A DNA stretch of 64,000 bases from Macrostomum lignano (lineage: Eukaryota). This document shows positions 12,603 through 33,549 of this stretch, one piece after another. Location: positions 1-64,000 of the forward strand of contig NIVC01001678.1 of assembly GCA_002269645.1 (NCBI GenBank), read 5' to 3'. The translations under genes were made by a program, and so were the position numbers. The number at the start of each line of letters is the position of its first letter. The stretch's first letter is position 1. The notes under the pieces are model-generated. The model searched no databases. It worked only from the letters and a program-made list of their open reading frames with translations, and was not told the DNA's origin.

Positions 12603-15600
12603 ATGCACCATCATCAGATTTACTATTCATATCTGACTGCAGCCGCCACCGCAGCCGCCGCCGCAGCCGAAGCTGACACAGAATCCCAATCTTCATCCTA
12701 TTATTTAAACAGTTTAAATAGCCGACCCGCGCTTCAAAACTGTTTAAATCGGCAGTTAAACTATCAGCCTACCGCAGCTGGGCTTCAGGAGTATCACCGA
12801 CTGCTGAGTGGCAGCGGCGGCAGTTCGTTCTCTGGTAAGTGCTGCTTGCTTGGTTTAATAACTTTATTTACAACATGATAAAATCTATCCCTCAACTCAA
12901 GGGCCAGGGGAGGCGAGAGAGAGAGGGGATTAATAATAGATTAATTAATTATGATAAAACCGACTACCGACTCTTAATCCGATCAGGCCGAACCGAGCAG
13001 TCGCAGCACTCAGGAGCTCCCAGGAAGCCAACTCCACTTCGTTTGACGCCACTTCATCATCAGCAGCATCAGCATCAAACTTCGTCGCTGCAGCCTCCGC
13101 CATGGCGGTCTTGGCTTCCCGACCGGGCTACGGCTGCCGGCCTCGAGAACGCGCCTCTCCCGCCGCTGCCGCCGCCGCCACCGCCACTTCCACCGCCGCC
13201 AATGCAGGGTTTCCGACCGGTGAAGCGAGTGCCATCAGCTGGCGCCGAGGCCGACTTCTCCCTCGGCAACGGCACTTCAAAGCGACCCGCCGCTGCAGCC
13301 GCCGCCGAAGAGTCCGACGCTCCGTTGGACCTTCGACTGCCCGGACGAATTCTTGCTAGCTCGACTGCCGCCGCCGAAGTTCGAGACGAAGTCGACGACG
13401 ACCGAAGCTCCTGCGACTTCAGCGGCGGCGGCGGCCGCCAGCCGGTGACGTCGTGCCACCAGTGCCGCCAGACCTTCTTGTGCCTGCGCGACCTGAACGG
13501 CCACTTCGAGAAGTCGCATCTGCACTCGCTGATGTCAGAGTTCGACAACACCAAGTCCTGGAAGTCGTCCGCAGTCGACAACAAGGAGCTCAACGTCGAG
13601 GCCACCATGGTGCGGCTGGAGAACGGCGACACGATCGGGTTCAAGTGTCCCGAGTGTGACTACTTCGCCAAGTGGCCCACGGAGCTGCAGAAGCACATCA
13701 TGGTGCACTCCAATGCCCGACCTCACGTGTGCGTCGTCTGCGGCTGCACCTACAAGTGGAAGTGGGACCTCGGCAGGCACTTCGACAAGTCGCACGAGTC
13801 CGGCGAGATGCCCAACCCGTACAAGAAGAACACGGTTAAGCCCGCTGTGAGTTTGCCTGCGGCAGCGGCTGAGGAGCCTGAGATTCCGGGAGGAGCTCAG
13901 TTTGCACTGCTCGACAGCTATGAGGTAAGTTTTGTACTTTTCAAATGGGGATTTAGGGAATAATATAAGACAGGAGTAAGCAGAGGGGAATGAGAGGGAG
14001 TATACTGAGGGAAAAGAGGGGGAGAACACAGATAGGATGTAAGGCCGATTAGCATTACAGGAAATGGAGTGGGTGGAGAGTTGCTCGCCACGAGGCGGCC
14101 CAATTAGCAGCTAATTAAACAATTAATTGCTCAAAGTAAGTCAGTCAAGGTTTGATAATGAGACCATATGTATTGAGCAATAACTTCCTTGGTCCCTGTT
14201 TCTAAGCCCATTGTCTGCGATAGAAATAAATTAGCAGCATTCTTTTAAAATTGCGTTTTTTAAATTGCGTGGTGTGAATGCGGAAAAATATTGACAATAC
14301 TTTTCTCCTACTAGTAGTAGGCGAGTGAAATCCTAGCCCGAAAATTAAGGAAAAATAATCAAGATAGAGTCTAGGATGGAATATGCATAGATTAGAATTG
14401 AGATATGGGATCAGTGTGTGAGATGGGATATGGGATATGAGTGTGAGATGGGATATGGGATCAGTGTGTGAGATGGGGATATTGGATCAAAATAGGAGAT
14501 GGGATATGGGATTAGAGTATGAGATGGGATCAGAATGTGAGATTTGGGATCAGAATGTGAGATTTGGGATCAGAATGTGAGATGGGATATGGTATCAGAG
14601 TGTGAGATGGGGATATGAGATCAGTGTGTGAGATAGGGAGATAGGGATATGGGATCAGAATGTGAGATAGGGAGATAGGGATATGGGATCAGAATGTGAG
14701 ATTGGGGATATGGGATCAGAATGTGAGATTGGGGATATGGGATCAGAATGTGAGATTGGGGATATGGGATCAGAATGTGAGATTGGGGATATGGGATCAG
14801 AATGTGAGATTGGGGATATGAGATCAGAATGTGAGATTGGGGATATGGGATCAGATGTGAGATGGGGATATGGGATCAGAATGTGAGATGGGGATATGGG
14901 ATCAGAATGTGAGATGGGGATATGGGATCAGAGTGTGAGATGGGATATGGGATCAGAATGTGAGATTGGGGATATGGGATCAGATGTGAGATTGGGATAT
15001 GGGATCAGAATGTGAGATTGGGGATATGGGATCAGATGTGAGATGGGGATATGGGATCAGAATGTGAGATTGGGGATATCGGATCAGAATGTGAGATGGG
15101 ATATGGGATCAGAGTGTGAGATGGGGATATAGGATCAGAATGTGAGATGGGGATGTGGGATCAGAGTGTGAGATGGGGATATGGGATCAGAGTGTGAGAT
15201 GGGGATATGGGATCAGAGTGTGAGATGGGGATGTGGGATCAGAGTGTGAGATGGGATATGGGATCAAAGTGTGAGATGGGGATGTGGGATCGCAAACTGT
15301 GGGATCAGGAACATGGGATCTGAATTTGAGATATGATTTAGAAATGCATTTGAAATCCGCCTATCCCACCTCAATCCATCAGTGGCAGCCTCAGCGTCGT
15401 GACGGCTTCGAGACTCCTCACCAGCCTCCTCCTCCGCAGTCTCTCGAGCCTCACCAACCGATTAAGAACAATCAACAGCAGCCGCTGCAAACGCCGAATA
15501 ACAACGAGTCGACGCCCCAGAGCAGCGCCACCAGCTGGCCGTTCACCTGCCCGATCTGCGGCGCCAAGGCCCGGTGGAAGTCGGAGCTGAAGTCGCACCT

Positions 15601-16679
15601 GGTGAACCACAGCAACTTCAAGCCGTACAGATGCGGATTTTGCCCCTACCGCAGCAAGTGGCGCTGGGACGTTGTGAAGCATCTGAAACGCTGTCCGGCT
15701 AAGCGAGCTGCCGACATCGAAGTCGACACAGCTGACGGCTCGAGGAGAGACGACGTGATTTATGACCCTCCGGATCCAGAGCTGTTTAGCAACGAGGCTG
15801 AGGTTCTGCTGTACGCCGGAGAACGCGGCAGCGGAGGCAGCAGCGGCAGCGGCAGCGGCGGCACTTCAAAGAGCTCGAGGCGCTCCGCTCCTACAGTGTC
15901 GGCATCATCGTCAGGCTCGGGTGCTGAGCGGGTGAGCTGGGATTCGGGAAACTGCTTTTCAGGTTTTTAATCCTGTAGGTTTTGTGAGTTAACTGGAAAT
16001 ATCATCGATACGGTCCCTCTGGTCCCGCAAGTCATGCTGATCCTCAGATCCAACAAATCCCACTGATCCCATAGATCCCACAAATCCCACTGATCCCACA
16101 GCTGATCCCATATTCCCTCTGATCCCACAAGTCCCTCTGATCCCATATTCCCTCTGATCCCACAAGTCCCTCTGATCCCACAAGTCCTGATCCCACAAGT
16201 CCTGATCCCACAAGTCCTTCTGATCCCACAAGTCCCGCTGATCCCACAAGTCCCTCTGATCCCACTGATCCCATAAATCCCTCTATCTCACAAGTCCCGC
16301 TGATCCCACAAGTCCCTCTGATCCCACAAGTCCCTCTGATCCCACAAGTCCCGCTGATCCCACAAGTCCCTCTGATCCCGCTGATCCCACAAGTCCCTAT
16401 GATCCCACAAGTCCCGCTGATCCATCTGATCCCACAAATCACTACGGTTAAAAATCCGATCAACTCTAACAATCCTATTGATCACTTAAAAAGATATCAA
16501 TAAAAATCCTCACTTTACTCCCCAATCCACAGCGCATCCTCAACGGTTCCGGCGCTGGAAGCTCCGGCAGTGAGTCGACTCAGTCCCGAGTCGGTCGCCC
16601 GTCGCTGGCCCAGGCCTCACCTACCCAGTTGCCGTCAGGGACATCAAAGGCAGCCGCCGCCACCGCCGCCGTGGAGTGA
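12603..16679 (+). CDS. Zinc-finger transcription factor, copy 1 (4 C2H2 + 1 C2HC finger, ~621 aa)
   Basis: Exons 12603-12834, 12987-13924, 15383-15931 and 16533-16679. All introns are GT-AG with matching phases (1,0,0); total 1866 nt ending in TGA. Fingers: CHQC..HFEKSH, CPEC..HIMVH, CVVC..HFDKSH, CPIC..HLVNH, CGFC..HLKRC. PLDLR motif at ~13322. Confidence 0.85.
14390..15300. repeat. 27-bp minisatellite GGGATATGGGATCAGAATGTGAGATTG filling intron 2 of copy 1
   Basis: Direct observation. The copy-2 equivalent is 25530-26200. Confidence 0.9.
16055..16440. repeat. 18-bp minisatellite GATCCCACAAGTCCCTCT in intron 3 of copy 1
   Basis: Direct observation. The copy-2 equivalent is ~26962-27347. Confidence 0.9.
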
Positions 16680-32700: not shown

Positions 32701-33549
32701 GGCCTCGACGTTGAGCTCCTTATTGTCGACTGCGGACGACTTCCAGGACTTGGTGTTGTCGAACTCGGACATCAGCGAGTGCAGATGCGACTTCTCGAAG
32801 TGGCCGTTCAGGTCACGCAGGCACAGGAAGGTCTGGCGGCACTGGTGGCACGACGTCACCGGCTGGCGGCCGCCGCCGCTGTTGCCGATGTCTCTGCCGC
32901 CGGCGCTTTTGCAGCCGCTTGAGTCGCGAAAATCGTCCGAATCGGCGTCTTCGCCGTCGACGACGGCTGGGGCGACGGCGGCGCCTGAGGCTGCTGGACT
33001 CTGCGAGACAGCCTCCTCCAGCGACTGTGGCGACTGCAGCGGCGGTGGCGGCGGCTGCCGACCCTGGCCAGCTCCGCGCATGATGGCGGCGAGCGTCTCC
33101 GGGCTCATCAGCTCGCCGCGTCTCGCCTTGATGCCACCGTCTTCGCCGTCGTCTGCGTCCTCGCCGTCCTCGGCTGCTGACAGGTCCAGCGGAGCTGCGG
33201 CGACATCTTCCTGACTGTGCCCGACGCTGAGATCCAGCGGAGCCTCCGGCGACTGCCGCAGCGGATTCTGCCGGGGAAAGTCTGGAAGACTCGGTGGCTG
33301 CGGCTGTGGCGGCGGAAGGCCCCAGAAGGGCAGCATGAGCGGCGGCTTGGGTGGCGGCCCAAACTCGGACGTTCTCGGCCGCTTGGCCGCCTCCTCGTTC
33401 TCGACTGCGTCGTCCTCGGCCGAGTTTCTCTGCGGCCTGGCCAGCTTTCGTCTGGAGCTGGCCGACAACTGCTGATGCTGGCTGCTGTTGTCGTCATGGC
33501 AACCGGCTAGGATCTCGGACTCCGATAGCATTGGCGGCGATTCTGACAT
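29707..33549 (-). CDS. Zinc-finger transcription factor, inverted paralog (6 fingers, two PLDLS motifs, polyQ/polyA/polyP tracts, ~850 aa)
   Basis: Large exon 33581-31204: acceptor TTTTCACCTCACAG, first ATG at 33549, donor GTAAGT at 31203. It encodes 5 fingers. A final exon ~29920-29707 encodes CSQCGHIAKTGADLASHVQLAH and TGA. The exact last acceptor (29921 or 29919) and any upstream exon are uncertain. Confidence 0.85.
29932..31185. repeat. 15-bp GGGATCTGGGGATTT array grading into (GGGATTT)n; fills the last intron of the minus-strand gene
   Basis: Direct observation. Confidence 0.95.

Follow-up and report, generated by a model that had tools for sequence, protein, structure and literature searches.

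Near-identity confined to one zinc-finger module of inverted paralogs in Macrostomum lignano points to ectopic gene conversion

A conserved block in diverged zinc-finger genes

The window analyzed here is a 64,000-nucleotide (nt) stretch of the flatworm Macrostomum lignano (contig NIVC01001678.1, positions 1 to 64,000), and it contains three predicted C2H2 zinc-finger genes. Two of them, A1 and A2, lie in tandem on the plus strand, and the third, B, is inverted with respect to both. A single block of 426 nt that encodes fingers 1-3 is nearly identical in all three genes, whereas A and B are highly diverged elsewhere. Judged from the DNA itself, this identity was very probably produced by ectopic gene conversion between A and B, which appear to be old paralogs. 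The three copies of the block are as follows.

13420..13845, plus strand: block in A1 (GGGRQPVTS...KNTVKPA), comprising fingers 1-3 with a 47-residue spacer between fingers 1 and 2
24566..24991, plus strand: block in A2, the tandem duplicate of A1, with four synonymous differences from B and five from A1
32459..32884, minus strand: block in the inverted paralog B, with five synonymous differences from A1

BLAST and repeat finding both align positions 13425-13845 and 24571-24991 with the reverse complement of 32459-32879, without gaps over 421 nt and with five and four mismatches, respectively. Ungapped extension lengthens the arms to the 426 nt listed above. The A1 and A2 blocks are 98-99% identical to the reverse complement of the B block, and 7467 nt separate the A2 copy from the inverted arm in B. 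A three-way alignment reveals seven variable sites, and at each of them a single copy departs from the other two: 13478, 13489 and 13537 in A1, 13447 and 13813 in A2, and 13582 and 13660 in B (all given in A1 coordinates). A1 and A2 thus differ at five positions within the block, all of them silent. Indeed, all seven changes are synonymous (nonsynonymous divergence, dN = 0) and the same 140-residue product is encoded by A1, A2 and B; seven silent changes out of seven would arise with a chance of ~2e-5 if there were no constraint. No fourth copy of the block is present within the 64-kb window.

Similarity is lost abruptly on both sides of the block. According to the three-way alignment and tblastx, A and B are unalignable there in DNA and in protein; the flanks consist of low-complexity sequence without A/B homology, including a (GGC)n run at the left edge. 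These results reproduce what a preliminary description of the window had reported, namely a 421-bp block with five and four exclusively synonymous substitutions, a spacer of ~7.5 kb to the second copy, and similarity that ends at both edges between dissimilar flanks. A plain recent inverted duplication is ruled out, because the flanks cannot be aligned on either side. Long, near-identical palindrome arms are likewise absent from the 10-36 kb interval, which holds only arms of 426 nt and 164 nt. In an alignment of flatworm relatives, the conserved domain extends from G(R/K)QP to NPYKKN, and the identical block exceeds this domain by one to two codons on the left and by five codons on the right.

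Silent divergence within and outside the block

Outside the block, tblastx detects A/B similarity only in fingers 4-5 (83% amino acid identity) and in a 21-residue C-terminal motif. We take A and B to be old paralogs because these segments, which are saturated, are all that still aligns. By the Nei-Gojobori method, the synonymous divergence (dS) between A and B is 0.058-0.071 in the block, with dN of 0. Fingers 4-5 yield a dS of 0.74 and the C-terminal motif is saturated; taken together, the two segments have a dS of ~1.1 and a dN of 0.14. Silent divergence is therefore ~15-fold lower in the block than in the remaining conserved coding sequence (binomial P = 1e-16, Fisher P = 3.5e-11).

Codon bias was controlled for by computing, from the domain's own codon usage, the proportion of codons that two independent codings of one amino acid sequence would have in common. 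This expectation is 0.65. The observed share is 43 of 64 codons (0.67) for fingers 4-5 with the C-terminal motif, which are thus saturated, but 126 of 132 (95.5%, P ~2e-17) for the block. The G+C content at third codon positions (GC3) is 0.93 in the block and also 0.93 in fingers 4-5 of B, which makes it uninformative as a signature of biased conversion.

The preliminary description took the paralogs to be much older than the block on account of changes in their second pair of fingers. As a whole, this pair (positions 15548-15711 in A1 and 31439-31602 in B) does show 84% identity and differs at 10 of 60 residues, but the baseline is uneven: finger 4 is 94% identical, compared to 74% from finger 5 onward.

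Distant ortholog DNA (Logan contig L001) is only 67% identical to the block, with a dS of 1.5. An equally low silent divergence among orthologs, which would have pointed to constraint on the nucleotides themselves, is not seen. Three features by which gene conversion is recognized are found at this locus: the paralogs are far more alike in one segment than elsewhere, silent sites included; the segment is a discrete tract with diverged sequence on both sides; and a distant ortholog diverges normally within it. The earlier proposal of conversion between inverted paralogs is supported by the difference in dS between the block and the rest of the genes, by the unalignable flanks and by the divergence of the ortholog.

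Protein comparisons point in the same direction. In an exhaustive protein search, the block is always less conserved (61-70%) than fingers 4-5 (65-88%) in other pairs of relatives. This order is reversed between A and B, for which the block is 100% and fingers 4-5 are 86.5% identical. The block protein retrieves only fragmentary flatworm relatives (63-77% identity), with no self or near-self protein among them, and a query with fingers 4-5 and the C-terminus of B gives no match.

Proposed mechanism

We propose that A and B, which lie tail to tail, are old copies of a single C2H2 zinc-finger transcription-factor gene, and that A was recently duplicated in tandem to give A1 and A2. Non-allelic homologous recombination without crossover would have copied ~426 bp from one paralog to the other. 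Homologous exchange requires high prior identity and is strongly inhibited by divergence. The converted tract would fill the domain of fingers 1-3, the sole stretch still similar enough to permit strand invasion and heteroduplex formation, and the unalignable low-complexity flanks would stop it. The tract edges presumably match those of the conserved domain because homologous pairing is possible only there. Since conversion, each copy would have acquired two to three private silent changes, with purifying selection keeping the protein identical. GC3 weakly suggests that the direction was from B to A. What the sequences show is where the copies are identical, how significant this is, where the identity ends and that no nucleotide constraint acts across species; how the exchange took place, how often and in which direction is inferred.

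Number of events

The exchange probably comprised more than one event. A candidate for another tract is found in finger 4:

15548..15627, plus strand: finger 4 segment of A1 (26455-26534 in A2), a probable older tract with its partner in B at 31523-31602
31523..31602, minus strand: corresponding finger 4 segment in B, the other half of this probable older tract

Here, A and B are identical at 75 of 80 nt (94%) with a dS of 0.17, and in the next 85 nt downstream they are identical at 63 with dS saturated. Finger 4 shares 22 of its 24 codons, compared to the chance expectation of 0.65 (P = 0.003, post hoc). This segment is probably an older and shorter conversion tract, which lies inside the region that was first taken as the old baseline. 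Within the block, three of the five sites that distinguish A1 from A2 cluster within 60 bp, and at these sites A2 agrees with B while A1 differs (P ~0.06, a rough estimate). The pattern suggests a later, short B-to-A2 tract, which would account for both the cluster and an excess of A1/A2 differences in the block. Finally, we find continuous homogenization since the duplication more plausible than conversion de novo, which would be unlikely at the divergence of 15-25% expected for the block.

Some points weigh against this interpretation. The seven singletons form a star-like pattern that fits one event as well as several, and since they give a star tree, a single event near the A1/A2 split would suffice to explain them. 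The five A1/A2 differences in the block exceed the ~1.3 expected from the flanks (P ~0.01; the expectation derives from a dS of 0.013 in exon 2 upstream of the block and ~1.4% difference in the intron), and this excess calls for a further event unless it arose by chance. What speaks for additional events is post hoc and weak, as the P values for finger 4 and for the cluster indicate. Furthermore, the analysis covers one assembled haplotype, and both the copies and the tandem duplication rest on that assembly. The repeated conversion envisaged in the preliminary description is favored by the finger 4 tract, the A2 = B cluster and the identity requirement, but it is unproven.

Alternative explanations

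The same block could also have been acquired in a one-off, homology-independent replacement, for example by template switching in microhomology-mediated break-induced replication ("exon-block capture"), with no continuing concerted evolution. The (GGC)n run at the left edge could give the microhomology, the seven singletons fit one event, and a single haplotype is unable to separate this route from homologous conversion. Even so, we consider it improbable, given that a homologous domain was replaced in frame and codon for codon without scars or indels, that the tract edges are the limits of homology, and that finger 4 probably holds another, older tract. An artifact of assembly or polishing, in which the A or B blocks were overwritten by paralog reads or copies were collapsed, would be easier to envisage in a window with ~20 kb of tandem arrays and in a highly duplicated genome, for which the Macrostomum contig compared is 94% identical to the window. 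Moreover, A1 and A2 differ over 2.3 kb by four single-base indels and no substitutions, which resembles homopolymer error. Against this, all three copies of the block carry private substitutions, every one silent and in frame. Mis-mapped polishing reads also need prior similarity, but the sharp edges adjoin unalignable flanks, and the intermediate divergence of finger 4 would not arise in this manner. The artifact is accordingly a very unlikely source of the identity.

Least probable of all, to the point of being negligible, is that a nucleotide-level constraint keeps the old paralogs identical with no exchange between them, for example because the block contains an RNA or a regulatory element or because codon selection is extreme. 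The block does have a strong codon bias, as seen in its GC3, but this bias predicts just 65% codon identity rather than the 95.5% observed, and fingers 4-5 of B have the same GC3 and yet are saturated relative to A. The block also matches no Rfam family and has no unusual RNA fold (z = +0.37). Constraint of this kind is largely excluded because the silent sites of the ortholog are saturated in the block. Of the explanations considered, conversion between A and B alone agrees with every test made here, and we retain it.

Gene anatomy

The gene models are predictions from sequence signals (splice sites and reading frame).

12603..15970, plus strand: gene A1, exons 12603-12834, 12987-13924 and 15383-15970; predicted product of 585 residues with five C2H2 fingers (3+2)
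23750..26877, plus strand: gene A2, predicted exons 23750-23980, 24133-25070 and 26290-26877; structure as in A1
29707..33606, minus strand: gene B, predicted long exon from 33606 to 31204 (801 codons) and second exon from 29898 to 29707

In the A1 model, the GTAAGT donors and CAG acceptors are canonical and the reading frame closes. Exon 2 encodes fingers 1-3 and exon 3 encodes fingers 4-5; the intervening intron 2 is mostly a 26-bp minisatellite. A GTGAGT at 13848, which would end the exon at the block edge, was rejected as the donor; A2 has ATGAGT at this position, and the GTAAGT at 13925 is conserved in both genes. The predicted exon 1 of A2 contains a 1-bp deletion at ~23926 (A1 position 12780) that breaks the frame. 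A2 may truly be defective, and thus a pseudogene, or the base may have been lost through a homopolymer error in the assembly, the latter because the surrounding 2.3 kb of A1 and A2 differs by four single-base indels only.

A2 and B are convergent. The long exon of B encodes, in order, an N-terminal region in which the motif PLDLS occurs twice, the block, a 280-residue linker rich in Gln, Pro and Ala (poly-Q/P/A), fingers 4-5, and the C-terminal motif YDPPDPEL..LYA. Its N-terminal region is unrelated to that of A. Splicing from a canonical donor (CAT|GTAAGT at 31204/31203) to a good acceptor at 29898 would link the long exon in frame with the small one. The predicted intron between them is a 15-bp minisatellite array (29933-31180). 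We note that the small exon (29707-29898, minus strand) is an open reading frame (ORF) for a lone C2H2 finger (LLPCSQCGHIAKTGADLASHVQLAH), the putative sixth finger of B, and that no counterpart of LLPCSQCGHIAKTGADLASHVQLAH occurs downstream of A1 or A2. B is also bracketed by two related long minisatellite arrays, 29933-31180 and 33635-35021 (GGGATTTGGGATCTG and GGGATCTGGGATTC), which are ~81% alike and in the same orientation. GGGAT-type arrays akin to these fill the A intron and the ends of the duplication units.

B has no intron across its two finger clusters, but an origin as a retrocopy was not adopted; its two best relatives (P0015 and P0017, taken as single contiguous ORFs) hold both clusters in one protein. 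Because of this arrangement in the relatives, the intronless state may be ancestral, with A having gained its minisatellite-filled introns.

Tandem duplication and neighboring DNA

A1 and A2 are carried by two tandem units of ~10.4-10.9 kb:

8174..18521, plus strand: tandem unit 1, which holds A1; clean junction minisatellite|TACGTTAAAAATTGTC at 18521/18529
18529..29415, plus strand: tandem unit 2, which holds A2; patchy divergence from unit 1

Divergence between A1 and A2 changes in steps along the units. There are no substitutions in the A1 interval 10700-13019, ~1.4% divergence in 13020-15357, again no substitutions in 15358-16769, and ~1.4% in 16770-17207. The patchiness suggests either exchange between the units or two haplotypes assembled in tandem.

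Tandem arrays with periods of 4-100 bp (minisatellites and microsatellites) make up ~20 kb of the 64-kb window, and many of them produce long spurious ORFs. Positions 1-2300 are GC-rich (0.69) and contain a pol fragment of a long terminal repeat retrotransposon, with an RT_RNaseH match above the Pfam cut-off and a weak match to the integrase core. On the minus strand, 52308-52835 is a CHMP1-like exon whose protein is 99% identical to an M. lignano entry, and 55487-55906 is a U1-70K-like exon, judged by eye from its RS/RD-rich tail, with no Pfam match in the ORF. From 49.6 to 61.8 kb, a stretch that does not include the finger genes, the window is colinear with another M. lignano contig (NIVC01000176.1:524160-544591, L003) and ~94% identical to it in unique DNA; the dS for the CHMP1 exon is 0.067. 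The divergence between these contigs is similar in size to the silent divergence among the three copies of the block. Because the identity is only ~94% and the CHMP1 exon has this dS, the window and NIVC01000176.1 appear to be related as homeologs, as diverged haplotypes or as sequences of very closely related sister species.

Family and likely function

Fingers of A and B have the form Cys-x2-Cys-x12-His-x3-5-His (or a terminal Cys) and are recognized by curated models: the Pfam model zf-H2C2_5 gives 56.3 bits with B and 43.6 with A, against a cut-off of 27 bits, and related Pfam families match A1 as well. By these sequence features, the products are C2H2 factors that have five or six fingers and belong to a family present in flatworms and molluscs. 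The relatives found are from trematodes, monogeneans and molluscs and carry uninformative names ("Zinc finger protein", "ZNF646-like"); the long mollusc relatives share the motifs KWPTELQKH..YKWKWDL and SKWKWDVVKHLKRC. A search of the PDB gives generic C2H2 matches only. Both proteins fall below the cut-off of 27 for the NRSF/REST-like finger model PF24540, B with 24.8 bits and A with 16.8 bits.

The predicted A and B proteins are likely sequence-specific transcriptional repressors. Both contain PLDL(S/R) motifs, which we take to resemble CtBP-binding motifs. A kinship with Drosophila Charlatan (Chn) is conceivable as a lead. Chn is described as a five-finger NRSF/REST-like repressor that binds CoREST (PMC2988793). 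A likewise has five C2H2 fingers, and both A and B match the REST-like Pfam model below threshold. Since A and B do not reach the cut-off of this model, the resemblance is tentative.

In the predicted models, A1, A2 and B encode one shared module of fingers 1-3 with differing N-termini and linkers and slightly differing fingers 4-5. The preliminary description had spoken of factors that share a DNA-binding module while other parts diverge. This is an apt account of the proteins, but selection for the module is hypothetical.

Implications

In a flatworm model whose genome is heavily duplicated, the locus provides a clean and well-bounded case of concerted evolution limited to one domain. Trees of the Macrostomum paralogs in this family would mislead if they were based on fingers 1-3, and reagents for RNA interference or CRISPR (clustered regularly interspaced short palindromic repeats) that are aimed at the block would hit A1, A2 and B alike. 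The shared module also bears on the interpretation of binding-site data.

The block has the same codon phase in A2 and B. A crossover within it, instead of a conversion, would place 24992-32458 in the opposite orientation and exchange the 3' halves of the two genes in frame, producing two hybrid factors, although we think it very doubtful that this occurs. If such inversions recur or are polymorphic, then the locus would be a natural domain-shuffling switch. If this is true, the repeats could be kept identical by selection for a shared DNA-binding module, whereby proteins of the A and B types, through different effector parts, would compete for common sites.

Comparison with known systems

In the palindromes of primate sex chromosomes, arm-to-arm conversion keeps long arms identical throughout. 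As proposed for the Macrostomum genes, identity there is maintained by intrachromosomal exchange between inverted copies; the difference is that the Macrostomum genes share just 426 bp and are otherwise unalignable.

Long-lasting segmental concerted evolution has been described in mammals for BMP8A/B, DDX19A/B and TUBG1/2 (Carson & Scherer 2009, PMC2720389), and the same authors speculate that homogenization may preserve binding domains. In these pairs, as in A and B, segments of old duplicates are homogenized and other parts diverge. The mammalian cases persist across many species and include introns, whereas the Macrostomum tract is purely exonic and is seen in one genome.

The closest parallel is the inverted, tail-to-tail Dlx pair of Capitella teleta, in which conversion is confined to the homeobox (McDougall et al. 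2011, PMC3199776). Both loci consist of linked, convergent transcription-factor paralogs of spiralians with near-identity restricted to the DNA-binding domain and divergence of the rest, and both tracts are short (150 bp in Capitella, 426 bp in Macrostomum). The Macrostomum locus differs in having C2H2 fingers rather than a homeobox, three participants, and a probable second, older tract in another finger. Domain-limited conversion of linked inverted paralogs is thus already documented, and the Macrostomum locus is a further example of an ordinary process.

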